A stretch of DNA of 63,242 nucleotides, counting the filler, from Octopus bimaculoides (lineage: Eukaryota), in assembly GCF_001194135.2 (NCBI RefSeq). It is 6 parts of 6 records of this genome, joined end to end, with 100 filler letters (N's around TTAATTAATTAA, not from the genome) between each part and the next. Parts side by side here need not be neighbours in the genome. Positions count along the whole stretch, not along the records: positions 34,948 to 61,959 come from NC_069002.1; 5 more parts are not named here. One strand, given 5' to 3'. The notes under the pieces were generated by a model. That model ran no database searches and was not told the DNA's origin. It saw only the letters and a list, made by a program, of their open reading frames with translations. The position numbers and the translations under genes were made by a program. This document shows, piece by piece, positions 1,573 to 61,959 of this stretch. Position 1 is the first letter of the stretch; each line of letters opens with the position of its first letter.

Positions 1573-1713
1573 TAGATATAAATATATACATATGAATAGA
1601 GATAGATAGACAGCTATATATATAGATATACGTACATATGTAAATATAATTTATATATATATATATATATATGTGTGTGTTAGTGTGTGTATGCATGTGT
1701 TTGTACATATACG

Positions 1714-1755
<42 letters not shown>

Positions 1756-1785
1756 CCCATACACACATACACACANNNNNNNNNN

Positions 1786-1832
<47 letters not shown>

Positions 1833-1880
1833 CACACACACAGATGTGTGTGTGTGTGTGTGAGTGTTTATACCCACATA
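1240..1880. repeat. Compound microsatellite (CA, TA, AAAG, GATA, TG)
   Basis: Visible directly in the sequence. Confidence 0.95.
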
Positions 1881-37027: not shown

Positions 37028-38562
37028 AGGGGATTTAACAGATCGGANNNNNNNNNNNNNNNNNNNNNNNNNNNNNNNNNNNNNNNNNNNNNNNNNNNNN
37101 NNNNNNNNNNNNNNNNNNNNNNNNNNNNNNNNNNNNNNNNNNNNNNNNNNNNNNNNNNNNNNNNNNNNNNNNNNNNNNNNNNNNNNNNNNNNNNNNNNNN
37201 NNNNNNNNNNNNNNNNNNNNNNNNNNNNNNNNNNNNNNNNNNNNNNNNNNNNNNNNNNNNNNNNNNNNNNNNNNNNNNNNNNNNNNNNNNNNNNNNNNNN
37301 NNNNNNNNNNNNNNNNNNNNNNNNNNNNNNNNNNNNNNNNNNNNNNNNNNNNNNNNNNNNNNNNNNNNNNNNNNNNNNNNNNNNNNNNNNNNNNNNNNNN
37401 NNNNNNNNNNNNNNNNNNNNNNNNNNNNNNNNNNNNNNNNNNNNNNNNNNNNNNNNNNNNNNNNNNNNNNNNNNNNNNNNNNNNNNNNNNNNNNNNNNNN
37501 NNNNNNNNNNNNNNNNNNNNNNNNNNNNNNNNNNNNNNNNNNNNNNNNNNNNNNNNNNNNNNNNNNNNNNNNNNNNNNNNNNNNNNNNNNNNNNNNNNNN
37601 NNNNNNNNNNNNNNNNNNNNNNNNNNNNNNNNNNNNNNNNNNNNNNNNNNNNNNNNNNNNNNNNNNNNNNNNNNNNNNNNNNNNNNNNNNNNNNNNNNNN
37701 NNNNNNNNNNAGGAAAAAATATTAAGCTTCCGGGGGACGTAAATCTCAAATGGGAAATGTGGTGTAAAAAAAAGAATATCTATTCACTTCCAACGGAATT
37801 CAATCTCAAAAGGGAAAATGTTGTAGTGATATATATATTACCACGCCTTTGTGAGTAAAAGGTGGATTTGACCAACTGCTATAAAAGATAAGGCCTTGTG
37901 CCTAAAATAGAAAAGAATAAATGTCCTCTCTATTTCTTGTATCTATTCAGCTACTAATATCGGTAAGGAAAGACTAGGCAATGAATCGATGAACAGGTAC
38001 TTCAGGGATACGTCTCATACCAGTAGAAAGTTATGCATTAGTACACATACGGCAATTTGGAGAATGCTAACGAGTATTATTAACAGTAATCTCTGCTGGA
38101 CCTGCGATAAACGTGTCACATTTCAGCCGGAAGGCCGTTGCTGAATATTTCTCGTTGTGAGATTTAAAAATAACGATTCTTCATTGTGTCATATTTCTTT
38201 TGAAGGCATCACATATGGTATTAAGAGCTGCTGAAAAATGTCAAGGTACTTCAGCATCATGCGTAACGACATTGTCGCCAAAACAATATACAATGCAATG
38301 CAGAAAGAAAACATCCTCTGCCACGTATGGAGAAACCCCTGTTTATTGAATGCATACATAGACACCAGTACAAGGAATACTGGTGGAAAATTAGCATAAA
38401 AAAATCTGCCAGTTTTAAGATAACGTGCCAAGCTCTAAACATAAAGCCGGACGAAATGCCTCTAAGTATTTTATCCAGAGTGCTAACGATTCTGCCAGCT
38501 TCCTCGCATTGTCAATACTAAATTAATTACATTTATAAGAGATGTAAAAATGTAGGTCTTAC

Positions 38563-38623
38563 CTGTCAGTTACATTACTCAAACTTACATAATCTCCTAT
38601 ACGTTGATGGAAAGGAGCGACAT
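38563..38623 (-). CDS. Cys-rich precursor gene, copy 1: middle exon (YVAPFHQRIGDYVSLSNVTD)
   Basis: It has the same acceptor as copy 2 (gtattttaatatctctttcag) and the donor GACAG|gtaaga. The exon is 61 nt (55+6), phase 1 to phase 2, with no stop codon. The last exon of this copy is not visible. Confidence 0.75.
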
Positions 38624-39584
38624 CTGAAAGAGATATTAAAATACATATGGAAGCATTGGATGTCTATTTACCACAGTTTTGTGTAGAAATACACAGAATA
38701 CTCAGGAAGCACTCAACAGATAATTCATTGAATAGAGGAGAATGTATTTAAGATAACACCATCTGAAACAAGATGGAGGATCATGAAGACTGGAACTCAG
38801 CGTTTCCTCACTCAGACACTTAATATGGCTGATCTCTGTTGTGATGGATATTTTTAATACATAAAGGAGGGGATAAAAACCAATGGAGCAATAAAAAGGA
38901 ATGACTAGAAAAAACAAACAAAAAACACATGAAACATTATATATAGCACTTGCTGATTCTATTCTGTAATTATTTTAGTAATTAAGAATCCTTAAAGCAG
39001 CAGCGAACTGGCAGAATCATTAGCTCGATGTTGACTTGTCTACGTACTCGTAAGCTAGGGACCAATAAGAAGAAGTACCAGACTTAAAAATGAGAAGTAC
39101 TTGGATCGATTTGTTCCACCACCAAATACTTAAATATAGGAATAAAACGAAAGCTGTAACGATGTTCAAAATTCTACCACCACAACCGACTGGAAAAGAA
39201 ACAAATCTGTTATGTGGTGAATGCGCATGGCCTAGTGGTTAGGGTGTTGTACTCACAATGGTGAGATATTATTTTCAATTCCTAGACCTGGTGGTGCGTA
39301 GTGTTCTTAAGCAAAGCAATTCGTCTCACGTTGCTTTGCAATCACATCGACACATGACTCGTTCATGTCTCGTCGATTTAATGGAGAGAGTGAGATAATA
39401 TAAAGAACATACATTTATTTGAACATGATAGACAAATAGTTTTGTGCAAGGCGTTCGGTGAGACCTGAAGGCTCGTACATCGTCTTCGACGGGAGGATCC
39501 CCCATATGGAGAAATGATTGACTACAAAGGGATTCTTAAACAACAGCTACTAATACACAAAACAATATATTCTTCTCTCCTCTA

Positions 39585-39785
39585 GGCCCCAGGCCCGAAA
39601 TCTTTTGGGAGGGGGCTAGTCGATTAGATCGACCTCAGTACGTAACTGGTATTTAATTTATCGACCCAGAAAGGATGAAAGGCAAAGTCGACCTCGGCAG
39701 AATTTGAACTCAGAACGTAAAGACAGACGAAATACCGCTAAGCATTTCGTCCGGCGTGCTAACGATTCTGCCAGCTCGCCGCCTT
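39585..39785 (-). mobile_element. SINE family B, well-preserved
   Basis: Reverse complement of aaggcggcgagctggcagaatcgttagcacgcc...gagttcaaattc...gtcgactttgcctttcatcc. Other minus-strand copies lie at 42330-42478 and 62555-62700. Confidence 0.85.
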
Positions 39786-40109
39786 ACAAAACAATATATT
39801 AGATGGTTATTGGCAGAAATGATTATAACAACTAGTTCTATAAATCGTGAAAAGTAGAAAACATATGAGTTACTATAAAACTAAGGAATGTCTTTCTGCG
39901 GTACACAAAACGTATTAAAGTGAGTGCAAGGACAGAGTAAACAGTTGGATCTTATACACATTATGTCTGTCAAAGACAGCTGGAAGTTTCCATAACGAAA
40001 TCGACTATTATCAAATGTTAACTGGATCTTGACTGTCTTTGAATAAACCCACAACTGCAATAAATGTTTTTAGAAGGATCCAGACTTACGGCACCGGCTG
40101 AAAACCGAG

Positions 40110-40385
40110 TGTCACCGCCCGTAAAGCCAATGAAAGAAAATTCAATAATGATGCTATTAGACAAACATTTCCCAGTAGGGCATAAATATAAGAAATTATT
40201 CAATAAACATTCTGTTAAACTATCATAAAAGATATTATAAACCTCAACAGCCATCAAGAGGTGAGCGGCGGCTGTAATTTCCGTAAGGCGGAGTGCTGCC
40301 CATTGGATCAACAATGTTTAACAAAATACATTGTATACGAAGCAGAAGTCCCAGCACACAACGGAAATTCAAACACATATCACTG
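40110..40385 (+). mobile_element. Penelope-like fragment (linker and start of GIY-YIG)
   Basis: LLDKHFPVGHKYKKLFNKHSVKLS ... CNFRKAECCPLDQQCLTKYIVYEAEV. Confidence 0.7.
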
Positions 40386-40717
40386 CTAATACCAGTAGTG
40401 GCGGTACCAACACCATTCTGCTTTGATATAGGAGTAACAGATTAGATCGTACCACCTGAATTCTTCCCAATTTCTATATGAAAGATTAGTCAAAGTGTTA
40501 ATTAAATGTTATATGTTTTATAGAAGAAGCGTACTTCCGTATACATGGTCTAAGCGTATTATATAAGAAGAGAGTTATTTATTTGAAAGCTCTAATTGCA
40601 TATAAATCTGCTGAATTAGCGTTATTCCTTTCTCCCCTTTCCACCTTTCTATTTCCCCCTTTTCTTCACTACATTTCAGATGACTATAAATTGAAAGAAA
40701 TTTCTAATTCTACTTAC

Positions 40718-40781
40718 ATTGTTTATCCGAGAAGGTGTATGAGATGAATACACAAAACAATAGGACACTGATTCCCTTCAT
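40718..40781 (-). CDS. Cys-rich precursor gene, copy 1: signal-peptide exon (MKGISVLLFCVFISYTFSDKQ)
   Basis: tatatttctctatcctcag|GTGCGTT ATG ... AAA CAA T|gtaagt, phase 1. It differs from copy 2 by 4 substitutions and one in-frame 3-nt indel. Confidence 0.8.
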
Positions 40782-43107
40782 AACGCACCTGAGGATAGAG
40801 AAATATAACAACGAGAGTCATTAAAAAACGGAAGCTTTTTTTCTTACAAAGAAGCAAAAGTCTACAGCTGAAATGTAGGTAACAATTCATTTTCAGCTAT
40901 TCAAATTTATTTCACTGAAAATCCAATCTTTACGACATGATCAATCAAACAATTAATAAACAAGGTAAAAGAGATGTGGCCAATCAAAGGAAACGTGGCG
41001 GAGAACAATAACAAAAAATCTAAAAAGCAGAGGGTTAACAATGGAACAAGCTGTCAAGGGTAATTTCAGTGATGGAAGGTGGGACGACATTGCTGTCTCC
41101 TTAAGTACCACAAGGCACAATGACAACCGAATGAATGACTGAAACAATATAGCTAAGTTAATTGTACCAATACTACTGATATGAAAATATAATTTAGGTG
41201 AAGATGATGTCTTCGAAGCATTTATCCGTTAATATTCTCCATAGTGTTAACAGTGAATGAAAAGTTTTTACTTCAAGTATATCTGGCTTCTATAATTATA
41301 TCATTGTTATTTCTGTCACGGTGGAATTTTGTATGTGAAATGTACACAGTCAAATATATTTTCTTTATTTCCTCTAACCGAAACCAGTTTCACTGTATAT
41401 TTAATTAACATGTTGCATTGGTATCTAACACCATACCTGAATAAGCATAATTGTCTGTGGCTTAAACGTCATATGGTCCTCGCACAAACAATTATGTAAT
41501 CAACATCCTTTAAAATGCAACACTTACCCCCACAATTTCGGGCCTTGTGCCTAAAGTAGAAAAGAATAAATGTCCTCTCTATTTCTTGTATCTATTCAGC
41601 TACTAATCTCGGTAAGGAAAAACTAGGCAATGGACCGATGAAGAGGTACTCCAGGAGTACGTCTCATACCAGTAGAAAGTTATGCATTAGTACACATACG
41701 GCAATTTGGAGAATGCTAACGAGCATTAACAGTAAACTCTGCTGGACCTGCGATAAATGTGTCACATTTCAGCTGGAAGACCATTGCCAACCTGGAACTG
41801 GAACATATCGATTTTGTTCTTCCTGTGGGGAAGTTTTCGGTAATTCTCCAAAAATTTTTCTGGTTTCTTCATTATCTTTTAGACATGGCACGGTTGCTAC
41901 NNNNNNNNNNNNNNNNNNNNNNNNNNNNNNNNNNNNNNNNNNNNNNNNNNNNNNNNNNNNNNNNNNNNNNNNNNNNNNNNNNNNNNNNNNNNNNNNNNNN
42001 NNNNNNNNNNNNNNNNNNNNNNNNNNNNNNNNNNNNNNNNNNNNNNNNNNNNNNNNNNNNNNNNNNNNNNNNNNNNNNNNNNNNNNNNNNNNNNNNNNNN
42101 NNNNNNNNNNNNNNNNNNNNNNNNNNNNNNNNNNNNNNNNNNNNNNNNNNNNNNNNNNNNNNNNNNNNNNNNNNNNNNNNNNNNNNNNNNNNNNNNNNNN
42201 NNNNNNNNNNNNNNNNNNNNNNNNNNNNNNNNNNNNNNNNNNNNNNNNNNNNNNNNNNNNNNNNNNNNNNNNNNNNNNNNNNNNNNNNNNNNNNNNNNNN
42301 NNNNNNNNNNNNNNNNNNNNNNNNNNNNAGTACGCAACTGGTACTTAATTTATCGATCCCCGAAAAGATGAAAGACAAAGTCGACCTCGGAAGAATTTGA
42401 ACTCAGAACGTAAAGACAGACGAAATACCGCTAAGCATTTCGCCCGGCGTGCTAACGTTTCTGCCAGCCCTCCGCCTTAAAATTGCTCAAATATCATTGT
42501 ATGGAGGAGAGGTTTGATGCATGTGAATGTCTCGTCTCAAATTCAGACAATGAGGACATCTTTTGTAAACTATTGAGAAATGTATAAATCGCTAATATCC
42601 AGCCAAAAGTGAAATTTTGTAAAACATTCCGGTTATCTTCTCTCTTTGCGGATAGCCGGACTGTACACATGCAAACATGCAACAAGCATCAAGCTCTACC
42701 ACTACCACTACCACCATCATCACTACCATAGCATACTCAGTCTATTGTTATTACTTAATCACATACAGCCACAATGAATAATTTAAATGTTACATACTTG
42801 TTAGATTCGAACGGTATTTATATAAAGAGAGCTCAGTAGACTTTCTCTTGTGTAAAATTCAAACTGGTTGATGAGGGTTGTGTAGTGTTTCTTATTCAGT
42901 GAACAGCTTTAAACCTTGCTTGCTCCAGCTTGTGCTTCTTTCTGTCTTTCTGAATTTACTCTCACAAGAGATTCGTCTTTTTGTTCACACACATACACAC
43001 ACTCGCACACCACACACACATTTGCACATGCATACATACATACATACATACATACATACATACATACATACATACATAATACATACATACGTACGTACGT
43101 ACATACA

Positions 43108-43143
<36 letters not shown>

Positions 43144-44099
43144 TCACGGGCATGGTTTATGCGATGTGACTTACCATTTACTGACACTTGCAGTTCCACA
43201 GCTGTCGAGCTACACATATCAGAACAATAGATGCGCGTCAAGAAGTTTACAGATTTCCACACGATGTTAGTTTACTGATTGTTGAATAACCAAAAATCCG
43301 ATCATAACATCTCTACGTAGCACAGCTTACACTGGATTCAAAACTGCATGATGGACGGGTTTTTACGACTTAGTTCCTCGGCTGATAGAAGAATAAAAGA
43401 AGATATAGCAATAAATAATATTGGCCAGGTATAACTAATCAACCAGCGCTGTAGTTGTTATGTCTCTACTTGTTGCCAATGATTAATGTATCTTGTATCA
43501 GTTTCTATGTTTTATTATTGTTTCGTTGCGATCCGGCGGCATCTGTTGCAAGCTGAGCAAAATGGTGAGCGGGTTTCCTCCGCCCTCACTTTCTGAGTTC
43601 GAATCCACCGATATCTATTTTGCTTTCCGTCCTTTCCCAATCGGTAAAATAAGTACCAGTTTTGTGCTGGGGTTGATGTAATTAGATATCTAATACCATT
43701 TTCGCTACATTCTGTATATATTTCTAGTAATGTTCGCAGCCACTTCAAAATGGCTGTCCGTTCGAACGGACTTTACTGTGATTTATTAAGTCCATGAGAA
43801 CATCTCTTCTAGCTGGTTAACGATGCGCAGTAGCATCCGAGATATTGCGAGCGGGGGAGCAAACCCATACCACCTTCTAACGTTAGGACCAGCAGACCAG
43901 CCTGGTTTCGGTCTCTTTCTGCCTCATTTCAGTACTGGACACCTCCTCTGTCTCGTTTATCTATGCCCCCAATATTAAGAGCATCCAATTTAGACCCCTA
44001 GGCCACAGGAAGAGCCAGGATCTTGATTCCGATCTAGGGACTGCAACAGATGCCCGGTGGGAGGCCACTGCGAAATCAAAGAGGTTGTCTATAAAGCCG

Positions 44100-46560: not shown

Positions 46561-48184
46561 TAATTGAACAAGTTGAGTATGGAAACGGATGTGAGTAGCA
46601 GAGAATCTCGACATTATGTGAAATTGAATTTTATCAGTTAAAACTCTCCATTTCCTCTTTATTTTATATACATATATATATATNNNNNNNNNNNNNNNNN
46701 NNNNNNNNNNNNNNNNNNNNNNNNNNNNNNNNNNNNNNNNNNNNNNNNNNNNNNNNNNNNNNNNNNNNNNNNNNNNNNNNNNNNNNNNNNNNNNNNNNNN
46801 NNNNNNNNNNNNNNNNNNNNNNNNNNNNNNNNNNNNNNNNNNNNNNNNNNNNNNNNNNNNNNNNNNNNNNNNNNNNNNNNNNNNNNNNNNNNNNNNNNNN
46901 NNNNNNNNNNNNNNNNNNNNNNNNNNNNNNNNNNNNNNNNNNNNNNNNNNNNNNNNNNNNNNNNNNNNNNNNNNNNNNNNNNNNNNNNNNNNNNNNNNNN
47001 NNNNNNNNNNNNNNNNNNNNNNNNNNNNNNNNNNNNNNNNNNNNNNNNNNNNNNNNNNNNNNNNNNNNNNNNNNNNNNNNNNNNNNNNNNNNNNNNNNNN
47101 NNNNNNNNNNNNNNNNNNNNNNNNNNNNNNNNNNNNNNNNNNNNNNNNNNNNNNNNNNNNNNNNNNNNNNNNNNNNNNNNNNNNNNNNNNNNNNNNNNNN
47201 NNNNNNNNNNNNNNNNNNNNNNNNNNNNNNNNNNNNNNNNNNNNNNNNNNNNNNNNNNNNNNNNNNNNNNNNNNNNNNNNNNNNNNNNNNNNNNNNNNNN
47301 NNNNNNNNNNNNNNNNNNNNNNNNNNNNNNNNNNNNNNNNNNNNNNNNNNNNNNNNNNNNNNNNNNNNNNNNNNNNNNNNNNNNNNNNNNNNNNNNNNNN
47401 NNNNNNNNNNNNNNNNNNNNNNNNNNNNNNNNNNNNNNNNNNNNNNNNNNNNNNNNNNNNNNNNNNNNNNNNNNNNNNNNNNNNNNNNNNNNNNNNNNNN
47501 NNNNNNNNNNNNNNNNNNNNNNNNNNNNNNNNNNNNNNNNNNNNNNNNNNNNNNNNNTATATATATATACAAAATTTTGATTTAAAAAACTTTAACGATA
47601 TTATAAACTATAAAGATTAATAATTAATCAAATATTATTAATCAAAAATAATCGAAAATATATCAACACTATTCAAATCGAAGTTCTAATATTATGTTGA
47701 AATGAAACTATAACTTCTAAATAATTTAGTGTTAAATAAGTTATCTATTAAAAAACCAAATGAATAGTATAAAAACAAGAATACATATTATTTTCAAATA
47801 GTAGAAAATCTTTAGCAAAGTGAAAACAGTACTTATCCAAATATATATGTATATATCAAAAAATTGATTAATGTGATGAGGTTCAATATTACTAATTGAT
47901 GTGGCTCGAACACCTGTGTCGAGCAATAATAAGTCGTAACTAGAATAACTCATTTCAAACAATATCAAATTTATGTTTTCAGTTATGTCAATGTTCCTCA
48001 CTGAACGTCAGAGCAACATCTGCGTTTCAAGAAATTAGGCTACAGATATCTGAAGAAGTAATGTCAGGTTGTAACATCTCTTTTCAACATATCTTAGCCA
48101 GGGTTTCAAACAATTACTGTATGGTGGATAGATTTTATGACTGATTATTTCTAATACGTTCCGGTATTTCTTCTTGATATTTTC

Positions 48185-50110: not shown

Positions 50111-50760
50111 TAACCCGGAAATCGCGACACACAGATATTGTTTTGAGCTGAGTGGGGGTGCTAGATTCCCTTGTTCATAAATATAAGGACACAGATCATG
50201 TCGTATAGCCAGCTGGAGACGATTTATCCTGGGGTTACAGCAACATTCATCCTAAATTAGAACTGCTATGTTATGTCGGTAATCTTTATTCCAATATAAC
50301 TAAATGTTGGATTATTCTATTTATTGTACTAAATAATTATGTACTATTATTTTTTATAACCTATTTTCAAATTTCCTAATTATTAATTAATAATTAAGAA
50401 AAGGGAATTTTTTTAAAGTGCCAAAAATTATTTTAAATGAATTATTTTTTAAATTTTTAATAGAATTAACAAGTAATAAGAAATAGAAGTAGTAACTTGT
50501 AATAAAAGTTTTAGTTTTTATAAAAGCTAATATTTTCTAAATCTAAATATTTTATTTGAAAATTTATCCCTTAGCTGCAATATTTTAAGTAAAAATTTTC
50601 TTGTTCTGTACTCTACCAAATCTAATAACTTGTCCTGAACTTTTCCGGGTTTATAATCTTAAGAATATTTCTTTCGTTCGCATTTTCCATGTAATAAATA
50701 TATATAAAGTCAGTCGCCACTTCAAAGTGTCTGTTGAATGTTACTACTAGTTTAAACGCA

Positions 50761-51070
50761 GGTGGATTCTCCACCAGCTGGATTCTCCACCAGCTGGATT
50801 CTCCACCAGCTGGATTCTCCACCAGCTGGATTCTCCACCAGCTGGATTCTCCACCAGCTGGATTCTCCACCAGCTGGATTCTCCACCAGCTGGATTCTCC
50901 ACCAGCTGGATTCTCCACCAGTTGGATTCTCCACCAGCTGGATTCTCCGCCAGCTGGATTCTCCGCCAGCTGGATTCTCCACCAGCTGGATTCTCCGCCA
51001 GCTGGATTCTCCGCCAGCTGGATTCTCCGCCAGCTGGATCCTCCACCAGCTGGATTCTCCACCAGCTGGA
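50761..51070. repeat. 16-bp minisatellite, about 19 copies of CTCCACCAGCTGGATT
   Basis: Counted directly. Variant units (ctccgccag) cluster in the right half. Confidence 0.95.
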
Positions 51071-51776
51071 TATCAGTGTAACACTCTGCACTCTTTATAT
51101 ACAATATATTGTTAGCAGGGGTGGGGGAAGAAACCCTAACTACCCTCAAGCAGCTAACAGAATCTGCGGGCATATAACTGCGGGCGCAACAAACCACACT
51201 ATTTGTTCTGGGGTATGTAGCCCATCGCCCTCTGCACCTCCATCTTCTACTGCTTTACCACACGCTTCTTTTCTCTCGTTGCTCTACTTATATCTCTGCT
51301 TCCTGCTTCTTTGTAATTAAATGTTATAAAATAGAACTTGGAGAATACTTCTCGTTGCAATAATGCAGTGTGACACTGCAATGTAAAATTTTATCATCCA
51401 TATCCATAACTTAAAGGCGAACACAACAGCGAAGAACGAAGCACTGAGATTTTGTTACCGTTCAATAAAACAAAGAACACAGCGAAGAGTGAATCACTAA
51501 GTATTTGTCATTGTTAAATAAATTTATTTAATTGAGATTTCAATAAAATTTGACGTATTATTAGCATAAATATATTAGATATTGAATACGTTGGTCGTAT
51601 TAATTTAGGGTTGTTAGAAAACTCATAGTTGTAGATTATGGTTTACAGACTTTCTCTTCTTTTACCATTTCTGTTCTTGGTGCAACATACGTGAATTTCT
51701 TTCCAGGAAAAATTACAAAATCATTAATGTTCGTTAACATTCTATATTTCACTATGTCTCTTGATGTTTATTCATA

Positions 51777-52078: not shown

Positions 52079-52298
52079 TCAATAAGATGGTAAATTTACA
52101 AGAAAAATCAGGAAAGCGATTACAGTTTGGCATAAACCGTTATTAGCCTCATGGATCATATTTTTTGAATTACAAGAGCACCTAAATATAAAATTACATT
52201 CACATGAATAACCAGAGCAGCAAAAAGGGCGATTTACATAGTTGTAAGAGTAGCAGACCCCCGTTGAACATGGAACATAAGGTGTCGTGTCTTCGTTA
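52079..52298 (-). CDS. Cys-rich precursor gene, copy 2: last exon (knottin/agatoxin-like 8-Cys domain plus hydrophobic tail)
   Basis: The acceptor is tattctgtatttgcag|T AAC GAA (phase 2). It encodes (S)NEDTTPYVPCSTGVCYSYNYVNRPFCCSGYSCECNFIFRCSCNSKNMIHEANNGLCQTVIAFLIFLVNLPSY*. The Cys spacing is C-x4-C-x10-CC-x4-C-x-C-x5-C-x-C. Confidence 0.75.
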
Positions 52299-52695
52299 CT
52301 GCAAATACAGAATATAGTTGGAAATAACAAATAGTATTAAATTATGTTTCTCATTAAGAGAGAAGGCAAAGAATATATAGGGGGAAGGGATCAGATGGTA
52401 CTGATGTCTTTTTTTAATCGACGGTGATATAACTAGAGAATATGAGGGGAATTGAACGCACAATATGCAGAACCGAAACAGGTACGACTAGTCCTATTTT
52501 TCTATTCTTTTAACAATTACTAACTGTGTTTTCTCGCATGTCTTAACAAGTAAGTATATAAATTTCTATCCAGAATTTTACAAGTAGATTTAAACAGTGA
52601 CAAAGGAATTAATAAATAAATATTGCTAATAGTTAGAGGGGAGGTAACAAGTAGAATATTAACGTTCGTCAGTTAATATTTGTAACAAATATGCA

Positions 52696-53229: not shown

Positions 53230-53930
53230 CAGATATGTTGATCCTCTATATTCAAATTATGGTCGCTATTTTGACGTAATACGGAGCAAGTAAATGAAAT
53301 AAAGAGTATATTGTGCAACGTTGTCCGTGAATTGCCTGTCACATTGGAGGAAAGAAAAATTAAAGCAGAGACAGAAGAATTTACCACGAAAATGAAAAAA
53401 AAAAAAACAAGATCAGAAGAAACAAATAAAAATGCATGTTGCTGGACGTAACACAATTTCGAACTTTTATTCGATATGTGATAATGTGCTTATGTATGCA
53501 CAGAGGGTCGCAATGCCAGTCTCGCTACAAAATCGAACGTTGAAGTAATTCAGCACTGGACATCCAGGAACTTCTACAATGAAGTCACGTATGAAGAATT
53601 ATGTTTACTGACGAAAATGGATCTAGATGTTGAGAAGTTGGTAAAATCCTGCCGAGGTTGTGCTCTTACGGATCGTAAAATTATGTACATGGTGAAATGT
53701 TCAAAATAGGAACATACAAGGTACAGGAATCAGCAGAAAAGGAGGTTTGCTGAAGGAAAGAAGTACTCATGGCGGTTCTCTACGATATTTTTGATGTGCC
53801 AACACCGCTCAGAAATCGTCGGACCAAGGCGTACCAAAACAAGAAAAATAAAACATATGGAATTGCTGGAAGAAGTTCCCGAAGGAAAAAATATTAAGCT
53901 TCCAGGGGACGTAAATCTCAAATAGGAGAT
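53230..53930 (+). mobile_element. Gypsy pol remnant (integrase zinc-binding region and C-terminal piece)
   Basis: EIKSILCNVVRELPVTLEE; FSICDNVLMYAQRV; GHPGTSTMKSRMKNYVY*..MDLDVEKLVKSCRGC. Its end is duplicated at 37711-37890. Confidence 0.7.
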
Positions 53931-55197
53931 GTGATGTAAAAAAAGAATATCTATTCACTTCCAACAGAATACAATCTAAAAAGGAAAGATGTTATGGTGA
54001 TATATATTACCACACCTTTGAGATTAAAAGGTGGATTCGACCAACTGATATAAAAGCTAAGGTGTCTCGTTCAAAAGAAAAAAGGAAAGTGTTGGAGTTT
54101 CGCGTGTTGGTAGCAGGAAGTTACGTCTGTGAATATATTGCTTTACCCCCGTTTCGTTAAAATCATATATCCACAACAAAGGGTATACAACATCCTGTTT
54201 GAGAGATGTAAACGAGGTTTCCGAAAGAACAAGCAAAAATATTCTCTTTCTTGACAATACTGTTCAGAACGAAAGACCTTAACCTTTATATGGTCTTAAA
54301 TTCTGCCTACACTGGTTTCTCTGTCTTTGTGAGAAAAACGATTTTCTTGGGTCGTTGTTTCATGTCATCTGATAATGATGGAGAGTAATGCCAGTCTACG
54401 ATCCTTAAGATCGTCAAGTAGTATAGCATGTTACATTTGTGTATATCGTGTTGGTTAAATTAACCCAAATACAGGCCTTGTGTGCTTCGAGTTACACAAA
54501 CTAATGACTAGTTAATACAACACACCACTGGGTTTGTAATAAGCTTCCATCTCAGTTCGGAGGTTCAATGACTTTAACAAAATAGCTAAACATGATAGTT
54601 TCCCTTAATCATATTCTATTTTGAATTGAATGTAATTTATTCCAATATGAGAACAATATAAATTCATTTCATTTCTGCATTCTTTCATACTAAAGAAGAA
54701 AACATTTGACTAAAGTGTTTCCCTCATCTAATTAAAATACGAGTAGAAAGAAGCTACATTTCAAAGTTTAGCAAACCTGAAATCTATCAGCTCATAGATG
54801 AAAGGTGCTAGGCTCGGATGTTAAAATTCTCTGCTATCTAAGATTCAGACATAAATTTCGAACCAAGCTCAATGAAAATCACTATTATGTATATTAAAAA
54901 GCTGTCTGGGAGGTCATATTGACACGCAACGAATCTTGTAGCCCAGAATGAAACCAGAGAGTTGGCAGAAAATTATAGGCCCACTAAACACACGCTGTCA
55001 CAAACTATTCCTCCAATAGCATTTCCAGTCAAAGATGTGGTGACTGATGAGCAGGAAGGTGGAAAAAGGCAAGAGCGAGGATGGGTGCAACAACTTTTCA
55101 TAAACAAACCTGTACTCTTTGAAGCGAAAAAAGGTAAAACGCAAGAGTCTTGCAGCAGTATGTCTTGATAGTGGGGAACGCAGTTCCTCATTATTCT

Positions 55198-55346
55198 TTT
55201 ATTCTTTTACTTGTTTCAGTCATTTGACTGCGGCCATGCTGGAGCACCGCCTTTAGTCGAGCAAATCGACCACAGGACTTATTTTTTGTAAGACTAGTAC
55301 TTATTCTATCGATCTCATATTCCAAACCGCTAAGTGTTGGGGGACA

Positions 55347-55394
<48 letters not shown>

Positions 55395-55420
55395 AACACA
55401 CAGACACACACAGACACACA

Positions 55421-55458
<38 letters not shown>

Positions 55459-55580
55459 ACGGGCTTTTTTTAGTTTCCGTCTACTAAATCCACTCATAAG
55501 GCTTTGGTCGGCCCGAGGTTAATGTAGAGAGACACTTGCCCAAGGTGCCACGCAGTGGCATGCTACTTACCGCCCAGCCA
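55198..55580 (-). mobile_element. SINE family A
   Basis: Reverse-complement copy in the intron of the Cys-rich gene copy 2. It is absent at the equivalent position in copy 1. Confidence 0.8.
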
Positions 55581-55949
55581 CTCTTTGAAGACATCACATA
55601 TAGTATTAACAGCTGCCGAAAAATGTCAAGGTACTTCCGCATCATGGGAAACAACGTTGCTGTCAAAACACTATACAATGCAATGCAGAAAGAAAAAACA
55701 TTCCCTGCCATGTATGCAGAAATCCCTGTTTATTGAATGCATACATAGACATCAGAACAAGGAATACTGGTGGAATATTAGCATAAAAAAACCTGCCAGT
55801 TTTAAAATAACGTGCCAAACTCAAAGCATAAAGCCGGATGAAGTGCCTCTAATTATTTCATCCAGAGTGCTAACGATTTTGCCAGCTTCCCCACCTTGTC
55901 AATACTAAATTAATTACACTAATATGAGATGTAGACACGTAGGTCTTAC

Positions 55950-56004
55950 CTTGTATTCCTCCTATGTGCATGATGTCTTCTCCTTAGATCGATGGTAGCG
56001 ACAT
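55950..56004 (-). CDS. Cys-rich precursor gene, copy 2: middle exon (DVATIDLRRRHHAHRRNT, basic pro-region)
   Basis: gtattttaatatctctttcag|ATGTCGCT...AATACAAG|gtaaga. The exon is 55 nt, phase 1 in and phase 2 out, matching both neighbouring exons. A paralog at 38563-38623 has the same phases. Confidence 0.8.
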
Positions 56005-56181
56005 CTGAAAGAGATATTAAAATACATATGGAAGAATTAGATGATCATTTACCAAAGTTTCGTATAGCGCTCATCAGATAAATCATTGAACAGAGGATAA
56101 TGTATTTATGATAACACCATCTGAAACAAGATGGAGGATCATGACAACTGGAACTCAGCATTTCCTCAGTGAGAGACGTAA

Positions 56182-56404
56182 CCCATTAAGTCCCAGAGTA
56201 CTTAAATTTCTGAATATTACTTTTAAATTTTACAGTTGATAGAAAATAGGTTGAAATGAAAAAAAAAAATTATTAAAACTCCTTTACTTCAAGTAGAAAT
56301 GGAAATACTCGGTGTCCTATAAATAGGACACTGCGACAATGTGATACAGCTTATTTAATGTTCTCATTTAGTGTCCTATTTATAGGACAGTGGGACTTAA
56401 TGGG
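56182..56404. mobile_element. piggyBac-type MITE (223 bp) in an intron of the Cys-rich gene copy 2
   Basis: Perfect 14-bp TIRs cccattaagtccca / tgggacttaatggg, flanked by (g)TAA and TTAA. The paralog has an empty single TTAA site at 38820-38823. Confidence 0.85.
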
Positions 56405-56574
56405 TTAATATGGCTCATCACTGTAGTGATGGATATTTTTAATACATAAAGGAGATAAAAACCAATGAAGCAATAAAAAGGAATGACAAGAAAACAAACA
56501 AAAAAAGACACATGAAACATTATATATAGCACTTGCTGATTCTCTTCCGTAATTATTTTATTAATTAAGAATTC

Positions 56575-56780
56575 TAAGGCAGAAACATTAGTACGCCGGG
56601 CGAAATACTTAGCGGCTTTTCGTCTATTTTCATGCTCTGAGTTCAAATTTCGCTGAGGTCGACTTTGCCGTTCATCCTTTCGGGGTCGATGAATTAAGAA
56701 CCAGTTGCGTACCTGGGGTTGATCTAATCGACTGGGCCCCCTCCCCCAAAATTTCGGTCCTTGTACCTGGAGTAGAAAAG
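56575..56780 (+). mobile_element. SINE family B
   Basis: Head, core and tail are recognisable. Confidence 0.75.
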
Positions 56781-57190
56781 AATAATTATGAATTCTGAAG
56801 GCGGCGGCGAACAGGCAGAATCGTTAGCTCGACAGACAATATTCTTCGTGGCATTTTCGCCAGTTCTGCTCTGATATAGGAGTAAGAAATCAGATCACAC
56901 CACTTGAATTCTTCCCGATTTCTATATGAAAGATTAATCGGTCATAGTGTTAATTAAATGTTATATATTATAGAGAAGAATCGTAATTCCGAATATTTCA
57001 TCTATGCGTAGTGTATATTAGAAGAGAAGTATTTATTTGAAAGCTCTAATTACATATAGATGGTGTACATCTGAAAGACCGCTGAGGTGATATTATTCAT
57101 TTTCCTCCTTTCCGCCATTCTATTACCCGCTTTTTCTCCCACTACATTTCAGTTGACCATAAATTGAAAGAAATTTCTAATTCTACTTAC

Positions 57191-57251
57191 CTTGTTTACC
57201 CGAGGTGTATGAAACGAATACACAAAACAATAGGACACTGATTCCCTTCAT
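57191..57251 (-). CDS. Cys-rich precursor gene, copy 2: first coding exon (signal peptide MKGISVLLFCVFVSYTSGKQ)
   Basis: The minus strand reads tatatttctctctcatcag|GTGCGTT ATG AAG GGA ATC ... AAA CAA G|gtaagt. This gives a strong acceptor (exon starts at 57258), a canonical donor and a phase-1 end. The peptide has a basic residue followed by a hydrophobic core. A paralogous exon lies at 40718-40781. Confidence 0.85.
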
Positions 57252-57489
57252 AACGCACCTGATGAGAGAGAAATATAACAACGAAAGCCATTAAAAACGG
57301 AAGCTTTTTTTCTTACAAAGAAGCAAAGGTTTACAGCTGAAATTTAGGTAACAACTATCATTTAGCTGTTTGAATTTATTTCACTGAAAATCCAATCTTT
57401 ACGACATGATCAATCAAACAATTAGTAAACAAGGTAAAAGAGACGTGGCCAATCAAAGGAAACGTGGCGGAGAACAATTACAAAAGATC

Positions 57490-57860
57490 TGCCCCTACGT
57501 TCTGAGTCCAAATTCCGCCGAGGCCGACTTTGCCTATCATCCTTTCGATGTCGATTAAATAAGTACCAGTTACGCACTGGTGTCGATATAATCGACTTAA
57601 TCCGTTTGTCTGTCCTTGTTTCTCTCCTCTATATTTAGCCCCTTGTGGGCAGTAAAGAAATAAGAAAGGTTAGCACGCCGGGCGAAATGCTTAGCGGTAT
57701 TTCTTCTGTCGTGACGTTCTGTGTTCAAATTTCGCCGAGGTCGACTTTGCCTTTCGTCCTGTCAGGGTCGATAAATTAAGTACCAGTTACATACTGGTTC
57801 GATTTAATTAACTGGTCCCCTTCCCAAAAATTTCGGGCCTTGTGCCTAAAGTAGAAAAGA
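57490..57860 (+). mobile_element. Two stacked SINE family B copies
   Basis: The core gaggtcgactttgcct..catcc is repeated at about 57520 and 57738. Confidence 0.75.
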
Positions 57861-59081
57861 ATTAATGGCCCCTCTTTTTCTTTTATCGATTCAGCTACTA
57901 ATCTCGGTAAGGAAAGACTAGGCAAAGAATCGATGAACAGGTACTTCAGGAGTACGTCTCATACCAGTAGAAAGTTATGCATTAGTACACATACGGCAAT
58001 TTGAAGAATGCTAACGAGTATTAACAGTAATCTCTGCTGGACCTGCGATAAATGTGTCACATTTCAGCCGGAAACCGTTGCCATCCTAAACTGGAACATA
58101 TCGATTTCGTTCTACCAGAGTTTTCGGTAATTCTCCAAAAACTGTTTCAAGATTCTACATTCCCTTTCAGATATGGCATTGTTGCCACACAGACACACAC
58201 AAACACACAGCACCTAAAACTCTATATGAAAAACGTATTGTTTTGACTGCTATGACAAAGCTACAGCAGAACCAGAATGTATTCACACGATTCTAAACAA
58301 AGAATATTGGTGAGTTAACTCAATACAAACAGCGATCTACTGATAGCAAAATTGGTCAAATGGTGTTCTGTGGAACAAAGAACGGCAGTCAGGCACTGTT
58401 GCAAAGATCAGCAGTTTGGTGGATGTGAGTGTTTCGACATAAAATAAGAAAATGGGAACATCTTTCGTAAACTAATGAGAAATGTATAACACAAACATCC
58501 AGCATAAATATGCTCACTTGTTCTTTCAGAACTGATTTGCATTAATTAAAAAAACAAAAATTACGAAAGCTCGACTTCATCCAAAACTTAAGGAGTCAAC
58601 TGATTCACTTTCATCAAATACAATCGATGAGATGTAAAGTGGAAATTTGTGAATCATTCCGGTTATCCTCTCTCTTTGCAGATCTTGGACTGTACACATG
58701 CAAACAGGCAACAAACGAATTAAGCTCTACCACTACCACCATCATCATTACCATAACATACTCTGTCTATTGTTATTACTGAATCACATACAGCCACAAT
58801 GAATAATCTAAATGTTACATACTTGTTAGATTCGAACGGTATTTATATAAAGAGAGCTCAGTAGACTTTCTCTTGCGTAAAATTCAAACTGGTTGATGAG
58901 GGCTGTGTTGTGCTAGTTATTCAGTGAACAGCTTTAAACCTTGCTTGCTCCAGCTTGTGCTTCCTTCTGTCTTTCTGAATTTGCTCTCACAAGAGATTCG
59001 TCTTTTTGTTTACACACATACACACGCTCGCACACCACACACACATTTGCACATACATACATACATACATACATACATACA

Positions 59082-59115
<34 letters not shown>

Positions 59116-60043
59116 NNNNNNNNNNNNNNNNNNNNNNNNNNNNNNNNNNNNNNNNNNNNNNNNNNNNNNNNNNNNNNNNNNNNNNNNNNNNNNNNNNNNN
59201 NNNNNNNNNNNNNNNNNNNNNNNNNNNNNNNNNNNNNNNNNNNNNNNNNNNNNNNNNNNNNNNNNNNNNNNNNNNNNNNNNNNNNNNNNNNNNNNNNNNN
59301 NNNNNNNNNNNNNNNNNNNNNNNNNNNNNNNNNNNNNNNNNNNNNNNNNNNNNAAAGAAGATATAACAATAAATAATATTGACCAGGTATAACTAATCAG
59401 CCAGCGCTGTAATTGTTATGTCTCTAATTGTTGCCAATGATTAATGTATCTTGTATCAGTTTCTTTGTGCTATTATTGTTTCGTGGCGATCCGGCGGCAT
59501 CTGTTGCAAGCTGAGCAAAATGGTGAGCGGGTTTCCTCCGCCCTCACTTTCTGAGTTCGAATCCACCGATATCTATTTTGCTTTCCATCATTTCCCGATC
59601 GATAAAATAAATACCAGTTTTGTGCTGGGGTTGATGTAATTAGATATCTAATACCATTTTCGCTACATTCTGTATATATTTCAAGTAATGTTCGCAGCCA
59701 CTTCAAAACGGCTGTCCGTTCGAACGGACTTTACTGAGATATATTAACTCCATGAGAACATCTCCTCTAGCCGAATAACGATGCGCAGTTGCATTGGAGA
59801 TATTGCGAGCAGGGGAGAAAACCCCTACCACCTTCTAGCGACAGGACCAGCAGACAAACCTGGTTTCGGTCTCTTTCTGCCTCACTCCAGTACTGGACAC
59901 CTCCTCTGTTAGAGATGGCGGTAGCTCGCTTCTGCTCGCAATAGATAGCTTTAAGGATAGAGAGGGTAAATTGACAACAATTGTTCAGTGGTGGCCTTTC
60001 CATCGCAAAGAAACACTCACACACACACGCAGATACGCGCGCG

Positions 60044-60997: not shown

Positions 60998-61959
60998 ACA
61001 AAACGTGATTAATGTGATGAGGTTTAATGTTGCTAACACCTGTGTCGAGCAATAATAAGTCGTAACTAGAATAACTCATTTCAAACAATATTAAATTTAT
61101 ATTCTCTGTTACGTCAACGTTCATCACTGAACGTCAGAGCAACATCTGCGTTTCAAGAAGTTAGACTACAGTTTTCCCCAGGAAATTAGGTTACAGATAT
61201 CTGAAGAAGCAAAGTCAGGTTGTAACATCTCTTTTCAACATATCTTACCCAGGGTTTCAAACGAATGCTGTATGGTGGATGGAATTTATGACTGATTACT
61301 TCGGCTGCGAACTAAGATCTCACAAATGATGGCTGCTGACCAAAATCATAATATATTACAGTATTTATTTAGAAATCGGTGGAAGACAGACTATAATTTT
61401 TTTTATTTCTTGGGAACATAAACGAAACGCCTTTTCTTCTTCACATGGTAGAGAATCAGAATCTAAACCAGAGCAAAAACAGAAATAAAAGAAATGAAGA
61501 GAAAAAGGAAACGGCGATGACTCAAGAAAACTAGGATTATTTAAGTACTTTCTTGTGTTCTGATGCATTTGCGCTTTTTGGACAAAATTTCTAATAAAGG
61601 TGACATAGAGAGAAATGTCATCCATGCATGCACAAGGATTGGTGGATGAAAATAAATGTAGCAAATAGATAATAGGTGTTTGCACTTAATGATCAGAGGG
61701 ACGACAAAATCTAAAATATTATTTCATCTAGGTCCAATTTAGAGCACTTTAGTGAAGAATGGAATACTGTAATTGATAACACACACTGATGGAGAGGTAA
61801 ATTCTCTACAGAATTCCAAGTGCTTTGCATGCAATAAATGGTAATATCAATAGACACCAGCATCGGTTGTCAAGCGATGTTGGGGGAACAAACACAGACA
61901 CACACACACACCCTCACACACACTCACACACTCACACACACACACACACACACACACAC

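Follow-up and report, generated by a model that had tools for sequence, protein, structure and literature searches.

The window analysed in this study is a stretch of 63,242 nucleotides of Octopus bimaculoides DNA, in which six parts of the genome are joined end to end with filler letters between them. The piece from 34,948 to 61,959 carries the gene LOC128250517 on the minus strand, and the stretch flagged for study is the 3' end of the terminal coding exon of this gene. On the minus strand, an open frame occupies 52079..52330 and terminates in ...CSCNSKNMIHEANNGLCQTVIAFLIFLVNLPSY before the stop. When 57251..57191, 56004..55950 and 52298..52079 (minus strand) were joined, they gave a coding sequence (CDS) of 336 nt for 111 amino acids (aa), and its translation matched exactly the NCBI protein "uncharacterized protein LOC128250517 [Octopus bimaculoides]". 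The gene lies on chromosome record CM046622.1 of GCA_001194135.2. Both introns are of the GT/AG type, with donors CAAG/GTAAGT and ACAAG/GTAAGA and acceptors ...tttcag/ and ...tttgcag/. A bacterial or phage nature of the window was rejected, since introns, microsatellites, a reverse-transcriptase remnant and assembly gaps mark the piece as nuclear DNA of an octopus. Nor is it a locus of a spider or a cone snail.

LOC128250517 encodes a prepropeptide consisting of a signal peptide, a hypervariable propeptide, an eight-cysteine knottin-type domain (C-C-CC-CxC-CxC) and a C-terminal extension. The CDS of exon 1 (57191..57251, minus strand, like all features of this gene) encodes MKGISVLLFCVFVSYTSGKQ and one base more, which opens the codon that follows, and its donor CAAG/GTAAGT is in phase 1. 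The signal peptide, read directly from the sequence, covers approximately residues 1-18 (MKGISVLLFCVFVSYTSG/KQ) and is conserved across the family described below. Exon 2 (55950..56004, 55 nt) encodes DVATIDLRRRHHAHRRNT, the hypervariable propeptide, and ends at the phase-2 donor AG/GTAAGA. Exon 3 (CDS 52079..52298, acceptor tatttgcag/T) carries the end of the propeptide, the eight-Cys domain, the tail and the stop. The cystine-knot-type domain extends from C49 to C81 (52172..52270) with the spacing C-x4-C-x10-CC-x4-C-x-C-x5-C-x-C, and the codon of the last framework Cys is at 52174..52172.

The tail of LOC128250517 comprises the 30 residues N82-Y111. Its first 12 residues (N82-G93, 52136..52171) form the polar spacer NSKNMIHEANNG, for which the family consensus is [SN]-S-[QK]-N-x-I-H-x-x-N-N-G. 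The other 18 (L94-Y111, 52082..52135) form the hydrophobic run LCQTVIAFLIFLVNLPSY, which contains C95. The stop codon TGA follows at 52079..52081, the same position as in 8 of the 11 family copies, and an AATAAA polyadenylation-signal consensus lies 307 nt 3' of it (51767..51772). An earlier interpretation made from this DNA alone, here called the sequence-only reading, had placed a hydrophobic tail at 52079..52175. This interval is correct within one base (tail codons 52171..52082, stop 52081..52079), and the polar spacer after the last CxC and the hydrophobic run up to the stop are both present in the 111-aa gene model. The tail also stands at the end of the annotated terminal exon, as had been supposed, with the AATAAA downstream and no strong internal donor. 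Donor candidates within the exon-3 CDS scored at most 1.8, compared with 7.2-8.6 for the two real donors of the gene, on a rough position matrix. The odd, ninth Cys of that reading exists (C95, codon TGC) and would be removed together with the tail, but it is private to LOC128250517, its place being taken by L, I, V or H elsewhere in the family. The original observation is thus confirmed, and its interpretation as an anchoring signal on a toxin-like modulator is partly supported.

LOC128250517 belongs to a family of similar genes. A word-indexed protein search with its single sequence returned no match beyond the query itself. When 1.84 billion representative proteins were scanned exhaustively with HMMER, four full-length relatives came up (E 3e-10 to 7e-22), with no further credible match. 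In total, the profile search gave eight O. bimaculoides models from six LOC genes, and cluster look-ups gave two extra isoforms. Scanning the loci for the Cys framework identified 11 genomic copies of exon 3. Three of these copies are unannotated (L002:+21863, L002:+26853 and L006:-19546), with acceptors, frames and tails intact. The copies lie on one chromosome, CM046622.1, in two clusters that span 29.17-29.27 Mb and 36.36-36.41 Mb. Its members share a near-invariant signal peptide followed by a variable propeptide that usually ends in K-R. All 11 exon-3 copies keep the eight Cys (C-C-CC-CxC-CxC) with hypervariable loops between them, and all 11 encode a hydrophobic tail, 28-35 residues long, with the consensus [SN]-S-[QK]-N-x-I-H-x-x-N-N-G-I-L-Q-T-V-I-A-F-L-I-F-L-V-N-L-P-S-Y before the stop. 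Two copies of cluster 2 are frameshifted near the end and continue into the former untranslated region (UTR), ending in NLHLIDVLFL and NFNLIDVLFL. A literature search for octopus knottins, glycosylphosphatidylinositol (GPI)-anchored inhibitor cystine knot (ICK) peptides, cephalopod CCWamide and the LOC identifiers gave no description of the family. The family is tandemly expanded; from these searches it appears undescribed, and it was seen only in O. bimaculoides.

Several observations concern the other members. The paralogue LOC128250514 (P0002) begins in the window, where its exons 1 and 2 occupy 40781..40718 and 38623..38563 of the minus strand. These two exons lie inside a colinear segmental duplication (59909..53883 corresponding to 43951..37711) that is 82-93% identical in non-coding DNA. 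Exon 3 of LOC128250514 is absent from the window piece and is located below 34948 (locus L002). LOC128250514 is followed by three alternative tandem terminal exons, and LOC128250541 uses two. Because of these tandem alternative terminal exons, the arrangement suggests an array of interchangeable knot exons behind a single promoter and signal exon. In P0004, P0010, P0011 and P0012, which are isoforms of LOC128250541 and LOC128250536, an upstream ATG adds 22-34 residues (MRNDNIMAIIEY..., MLLRHSVRIV...). Such upstream starts would bury the signal peptide and are probably mis-called.

The relatives that bear on the origin of this family are the CCWamides. Spiralian CCWamides are orthologues of the arthropod agatoxin-like peptides (ALP) (Thiel et al. 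2021, PMC8557429). Their precursors are short and contain eight Cys; of the three exons, the first carries the signal and the last the peptide, and a conserved phase-2 intron lies just 5' of the peptide (PMC8557429). The splice pattern is phase 1 and then phase 2 in Lottia, Notospermus and Centruroides (PMC8557429 supplement). CCWamide/ALP is widespread in protostomes, and its receptor and function are unknown as of 2026 (PMC8557429; PMC13311285). The intron phases (1, 2) and three-exon plan of LOC128250517 are identical to this published pattern. When the octopus family profile was compared by hhalign with an alignment of 17 CCWamide/ALP precursors taken from the PMC8557429 supplement, the probability was 96.7% (E 4e-10), and the eight invariant Cys columns of the two aligned with each other. 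The domain-only score of 35.5 was compared with two shuffle controls. It stood against 15.4 +/- 3.6 in 100 shuffles with the Cys columns kept, and against 23.6 +/- 3.7 (maximum 33.1) in 100 within-loop shuffles; in neither control did any of the 100 shuffles attain it. This indicates that most of the profile signal comes from the framework and the loop lengths, to which the residues themselves add modestly.

A canonical CCWamide-like gene was also found at the edge of each cluster, with last exons carrying CKCNPFWRANCRC and CRCNPFWKSNCRC. The CKCNPFWRANCRC gene ends in ...CAQWQWKCAEVPRTPDETCCDGFFCKCNPFWRANCRCHSLSLSQTALEGCRKRK before its stop, has a phase-2 acceptor upstream, and matched the CCWamide/ALP profile with an hhalign probability of 98.3% (E 1.5e-14). 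The second ends in ...CCEGMECRCNPFWKSNCRCYELTYEDIGINPPSG. Their last exons lie at L005:+1647..1880 and L006:-4268, and the genes encode 131 aa and 141 aa. Both genes do without the usual W-G-R amidation motif, their ends being ...EGCRKRK and ...GINPPSG. A word-indexed protein search with the neighbouring CCWamide-like exon gave no match. In the neighbouring canonical gene the phase-2 intron splits xxA/GGG AGA CAT AAG AGA. In LOC128250517 the split codon is AG/T (Ser), with H-R-R two residues upstream, and most paralogues have K-R 4-6 residues into exon 3. The tail of LOC128250517, ending in ...NLPSY, has no Gly-basic amidation signal, and so the amidated aromatic C-terminus of a CCWamide is missing here. 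Because of the shared Cys framework, the profile similarity, the phase-1/phase-2 three-exon plan and the adjoining canonical genes, we conclude from the comparison that the family is a tandem offshoot of the CCWamide gene, in which the short amidated C-terminus was exchanged for a hydrophobic tail.

Matches to curated toxin families were below threshold and serve as a pointer, not as proof. Pfam Toxin_9 gave 14.4 bits against a gathering cutoff of 21.3 (E 0.049; 0.04-0.05 overall), and one family member matched Toxin_35 at E 0.0065, so that in the Pfam search no curated ICK family took in the octopus family at its gathering score. For comparison, 13 of the 17 CCWamide/ALP precursors matched Toxin_9 at E <= 1, the best at 1.7e-5. 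The best PDB sequence matches of the family profile were omega-agatoxin IVA/IVB (1iva/1oav, 1agg). With E 0.2-0.3 these are not significant, and they span CC-x4-CxC-x6-CxC. The UPAR_LY6 family of three-finger proteins was matched by 0 of 8 members in Pfam at E <= 1.

The layout of the tail was then set against the published rule for GPI signals. This rule calls for a small omega residue (A/C/D/G/N/S), a small residue at omega+2, a hydrophilic spacer of 8-12 residues as well as a hydrophobic tail of 15-20 residues at the C-terminus (PMC9098846). It was applied by hand. With C81 as omega (C81/N82-S83), the spacer NSKNMIHEANNG has 12 residues and the tail 18, which fits the rule. C-[S/N]-S is found in 10 of the 11 copies and C-V-A in the remaining one. 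LOC128250517 has a second small-x-small candidate, N91/N-G, with a spacer of 2-5 residues, below the 8-12 of the rule, and only the C81 site is conserved in the family. A GPI-type arrangement, as the sequence-only reading had proposed, thus fits the rule only when C81, itself a framework Cys of the knot, is taken as omega, and not at the small-residue site A-N-N-G implied there, which is unconserved (present in about half of the copies) and leaves a spacer of only 2-5 residues.

The hydrophobic run has a best 12-residue Kyte-Doolittle mean of 2.67 and is interrupted by Q96, T97 and N108. Its 19-residue Hessa sum was +4.7 for LOC128250517 and ranged from +2.6 to +6.8 over the nine tail-bearing sequences scored. 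The run is marginally hydrophobic, and such sums are poor for a transmembrane helix. Marginal hydrophobicity of this kind is typical of GPI signals. No charged cytosolic residues follow the run. These properties also bear on the possibility that the tail is a permanent type I transmembrane anchor, which would leave a cytosolic end of 4-5 residues (NLPSY) and would not be exchanged for GPI. Its position at the extreme C-terminus of a signal-peptide protein would suit such an anchor, and AlphaFold2 drew residues 84-106 as a helix, in a model of low confidence. However, the uninterrupted apolar core is only about 10-13 residues long, with the three polar residues within the run, the Hessa sums are those just given, and there are no flanking basic stop-transfer residues. 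We consider a permanent anchor improbable.

We also asked how unusual such a tail is in this DNA. Among 1162 stop-terminated open frames of at least 31 codons, drawn from the window piece and the related loci L002-L005, 23 (2%) ended equally hydrophobic, and by our estimate about ten of the 23 are the family's own tails. The hydrophobicity of the tail is unusual, not extreme, for this AT/T-rich genome.

Splicing offers a route by which the hydrophobic run may be deleted. In the annotated isoforms X1/X2 of LOC128250541, the protein ends ...DNAILQT-CHIMVSIKKTVMAELAVDDRRYG, while the genomic exon reads on as ...ILQTVSAFLVFLVNFNLIDVLFL to its stop. The donor used, ACT/GTAAGC, lies directly after ILQT, and the acceptor ttttacattgcag/TGTCAC lies about 580 nt downstream. 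In LOC128250517 a homologous site (CAA ACT/GTAATC) has its GT at 52122..52123, directly 3' of Q96-T97. Its rough score is -2.0, compared with +1.6 for the LOC128250541 donor. The acceptor and the first codons of exon 4 are conserved downstream of LOC128250517, and the acceptor is also found behind four other copies. Behind LOC128250517 it would open a candidate optional exon 4 (51247..51375, minus strand; acceptor ttttacattgcag/TGTCAC) with a 42-codon frame, CHTALLQREVFSKFYFITFNYKEAGSRDISRATREKKRVVKQ, ending in a stop; this exon is unannotated for LOC128250517. Conservation collapses immediately after the exon-4 acceptor, as it does at exon 2. Since a paralogue has a tail-skipping isoform, the family may make both anchored and free forms. 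An internal donor that removes the tail, which the sequence-only reading had named as a danger to its proposal, is thus annotated in LOC128250541 X1/X2, but the corresponding site in LOC128250517 is weak (GTAATC) and unannotated.

It could be argued further that the tail of LOC128250517 is usually spliced out. The donor at 52123 would then be joined to the acceptor at 51376/51375, the tail-bearing model would be a minor, intron-retaining form, and the product would be a soluble protein of 139 aa with ten Cys, ending ...NNGLCQT-CHTALLQREVFSKFY...VVKQ. The NCBI isoforms X1/X2 of LOC128250541 (ILQT/CHIMVSIKKTVMAELAVDDRRYG) do exactly this, the acceptor is conserved behind LOC128250517 and four other copies, and the extra exon would add a tenth Cys in LOC128250517, which would make the count even. 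The AATAAA at 51772 falls within the would-be intron, and a polyadenylation signal within an intron is the layout expected for a choice between splicing and polyadenylation. On the other side, the donor of LOC128250517 is weak (-2.0) relative to the paralogue (+1.6) and to the real donors (7.2-8.6), the GT is lost in two copies (B3 and 541X3), and the acceptor is mutated to GGAG in one copy. The exon-4 open frames range from 6 to 42 aa without coding constraint, and the NCBI annotation of LOC128250517 is the tail-bearing form only. Routine removal of the tail is hardly to be expected, and tail skipping in LOC128250517 is at most a minor route on present evidence.

Divergence was compared along seven exon-3 copies aligned with their flanks. 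The mean pairwise identity was 0.73 in the upstream intron (80 nt), 0.55 in the propeptide part and 0.55 in the Cys-rich domain. Exon 2 and the Cys-rich part of exon 3 have about 55% identity, compared with 73-85% in the adjacent introns and 3'UTR. In the knot loops dS was 0.76 and dN 1.25 (synonymous and nonsynonymous divergence), and the dS of the tail was 0.1-0.3. Synonymous divergence was also raised in the hypervariable region. Such focal hypervariability could come from diversifying selection or local hypermutation, or else from flanks that evolve in concert. Over 11 copies, the dN/dS of the hydrophobic core was 0.57-0.68, compared with 1.15-1.39 in the spacer. The tail is inherited by every copy, and its greasy part is perhaps mildly constrained.

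A number of results weigh against a tail with an anchoring function. The mean pairwise identity of the tail (0.78 in the seven copies) is on a par with the 0.77 measured over the 3'UTR's first 60 nt, and the same holds for the 11-copy set (0.76 and 0.77). The whole-tail dN/dS (Nei-Gojobori) was 0.8 in the seven copies and 1.3 without P0005, and in random-mutation simulations neutral drift since duplication was compatible with a frame kept open and hydrophobic. Reading through the stop of the neighbouring CCWamide-like gene gives the hydrophobic CLLFFLIHFVYHFFFSFFLL. Since T-rich UTR translates into hydrophobic sequence, a stop-loss accident could create a functionless tail. The conserved omega candidate is itself a framework Cys, which should be disulfide-bonded and has no linker to the knot, and this may hinder the transamidase. 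Cys111 of Thy-1 is a precedent for a disulfide-bonded omega Cys. The AlphaFold2 model, built on an eight-sequence alignment, reached a pLDDT (predicted local distance difference test) of only 57, which is low confidence, and the sole knot element that it draws is a hairpin (70-73/79-82) across the two CxC motifs. Finally, among the 1.84 billion representative proteins there was no orthologue in other cephalopods.

As the tail is no better conserved than the UTR and the overall dN/dS is close to 1, conservation is no demonstration of function. Tail conservation as a proof of function was rejected for these reasons, together with the neutral simulations that reproduce the retention of the tail. 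The sequence-only reading had named conservation of the tail among orthologues as a check. Among the paralogues, the tail occurs in all 11 copies, with no excess of identity over the 3'UTR and an overall dN/dS near 1. A DNA comparison of the tail with the neighbouring CCWamide-like gene showed no significant nucleotide similarity.

The same data can be read as those of an inert or clipped C-terminal extension on a freely secreted knottin, which arose in the founder by stop loss or frameshift into the T-rich 3'UTR and was passed on to all copies. The active product would then be a venom, antimicrobial or signalling peptide. The equal identities of tail and UTR and the overall dN/dS near 1 agree with this, as do the neutral simulations, which yield both the open frame and the hydrophobicity, and the likewise hydrophobic read-through of the CCWamide-like UTR. 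About 1-2% of random open frames here end equally hydrophobic, two copies of cluster 2 are frameshifted and read into former UTR, and secreted toxins and defence peptides typically have hypervariable loops (as in the conotoxins). However, there is no conserved dibasic or other obvious processing site, only single K/R residues at varying positions, and the dN/dS of the hydrophobic core (0.57-0.68) is below that of the spacer. A functionless run is unlikely to accompany an expansion to 11 copies. A secretory protein with an uncleaved terminal hydrophobic run of 14-18 residues is normally GPI-processed, membrane-retained or degraded, and this makes an inert tail unlikely. We regard the inert extension as less likely than not.

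It must also be considered that the gene model is an artefact, or the gene a decaying one from which no protein is made. All that is known of the protein is a computed NCBI model, no match was found outside O. bimaculoides, the loci are unmentioned in the searched literature, and the region is repeat-rich with assembly gaps. Against this stand the canonical strong splice sites with conserved phases over three exons, the conserved signal exon, and the eight framework Cys codons retained in 11 of 11 copies despite extreme loop divergence. Several loci also have multiple NCBI isoforms, which we read as pointing to transcript evidence. That no protein is made is very unlikely.

In this study, we tentatively favour the reading that the tail is a GPI-attachment or membrane-anchoring signal on a CCWamide-derived knottin, and we give it slightly less than an even chance on the sequence features described. 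The C-terminal run would be too short and too polar for a stable transmembrane helix, and it has no charged cytosolic stop. After cleavage of the signal peptide, it would keep the precursor on the luminal side of the endoplasmic reticulum membrane and serve there as the GPI-attachment signal. The transamidase would cut at or beside the last knot Cys (C81-N82-S83), the knot would end up lipid-tethered to the cell surface at its outer leaflet, and the signal would take the private Cys95 with it, as it would on cleavage at either candidate site. Alternative splicing just after ..ILQT gives at least one paralogue a soluble end in place of the hydrophobic run. The more detailed proposal, that the octopus family represents natural lipid-tethered CCWamide-derived knottins, GPI-anchored at the base of the knot, with an anchored/soluble switch in at least one gene through a choice between splicing and polyadenylation within the terminal exon, is offered as a doubtful extension of the favoured reading.

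As to what an anchored knot might bind, the hypervariable loops suggest fast-changing partners. The knot would bind prey, a pathogen, a gamete or an expanded receptor family and not one conserved channel. In our view such loops agree more readily with exogenous or recognition targets than with a conserved cis modulator of the lynx1 kind. The lynx1-like cis-modulator role put forward in the sequence-only reading found no direct support, given hypervariable knot loops and no UPAR_LY6 match, and it is speculative. Some small Cys-rich proteins of fertilisation (e.g., Bouncer) are GPI-anchored and evolve rapidly, and the octopus has expanded receptor families. Their relevance to this family is speculation.

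The surroundings of the genes have features of their own. About 1 kb downstream of LOC128250517, at 50759..51071, a 16-bp unit (CAGCTGGATTCTCCAC) is repeated in tandem (19.6 copies, 96% matches), and this repeat yields long spurious open reading frames in several frames. Between two family genes, the plus-strand open reading frame 48827..49267 matches RVT_1 weakly (E 1.5e-4, under the gathering score) and is probably a retroelement remnant. A GC-rich block extends over 47.9-49.9 kb against a background of 35% GC. There are four assembly gaps (N runs) at 37048..37710, 41901..42328, 46684..47557 and 59116..59353, one of them in intron 2 of LOC128250514. The (ACAT)n and (CA)n microsatellites at 43026..43141, 59051..59115, 55349..55458 and 61888..61959 occupy matching places in both duplicated segments.

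The family appears to be new as an ICK scaffold of the CCWamide/agatoxin-like type, expanded and hypervariable, with a membrane-anchor-like C-terminus. In a cephalopod, this scaffold has been expanded to at least 11 hypervariable copies, each with such a C-terminal signal. If the anchor is true, it would be a new deployment of knottins, with cell-surface display rather than secretion, and no GPI-anchored family of ICK peptides would have been known from nature before. Tethered toxin-fold proteins would then have arisen a second time, independently of Ly6/lynx1, and the family would be a knottin counterpart of the Ly6/lynx1 prototoxins and a natural counterpart of engineered tethered toxins that could serve as a template for tethered-toxin tools. 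Where it is expressed (suckers, salivary gland, gametes or neurons) would indicate which biology it serves. Should the tail prove inert, the locus is still a clean molluscan case, outside the cone snails, of conserved flanks around a hypervariable Cys-framework exon.

Among known systems, the closest are the CCWamide/ALP genes, with U8-agatoxin on the arthropod side. Both have a signal peptide, a non-conserved propeptide and an eight-Cys peptide in the last of three exons, and in both the second (phase-2) intron lies just upstream of the mature peptide. The octopus family differs in having a hydrophobic-ended extension of 28-35 residues instead of the aromatic-Gly-basic amidation signal. The codon split by the phase-2 intron is Ser (AG/T) in LOC128250517, not Lys or Arg, the octopus loops are shorter (x4, x5 compared with x6, x6-7 in CCWamides) and hypervariable, and the family is tandemly expanded in one octopus species only. 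Spiders recruited CCWamide/agatoxin-like peptides into venom as free peptides. The omega-agatoxins IVA/IVB, to which the octopus sequence match is below significance, are spider venom peptides. In omega-agatoxins, a hydrophobic stretch of about 10 residues after the last CxC is retained on the secreted toxin and is not known to act as a membrane anchor or signal.

Lynx1 and its Ly6/uPAR relatives resemble the octopus family in the idea of a cell-tethered toxin fold. They have a small disulfide-rich domain with a signal at the N-terminus and, from the last Cys or directly after it, a hydrophobic signal at the C-terminus. However, lynx1 has a three-finger LU domain, whereas the octopus framework is of the ICK type (CC..CxC..CxC) without a UPAR_LY6 match; GPI anchoring is proven for lynx1 and proposed for the octopus family; and lynx1 is a conserved protein, unlike the hypervariable octopus loops. 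The conotoxins share a conserved signal and non-coding flanks around a hypervariable Cys-framework region, where synonymous and nonsynonymous divergence are both raised, and they are molluscan and tandemly expanded too, but they have no detectable sequence relationship with the octopus family. Conotoxins are secreted in venom and are not known to carry a hydrophobic signal at the C-terminus. Engineered tethered toxins, in which a GPI signal at the C-terminus presents a knottin at the cell surface, have the same design that we propose for the octopus family. They are artificial and include a long flexible linker between the knottin and the GPI signal, while the linker from the knot to the putative omega site in the octopus family would be zero to a few residues.

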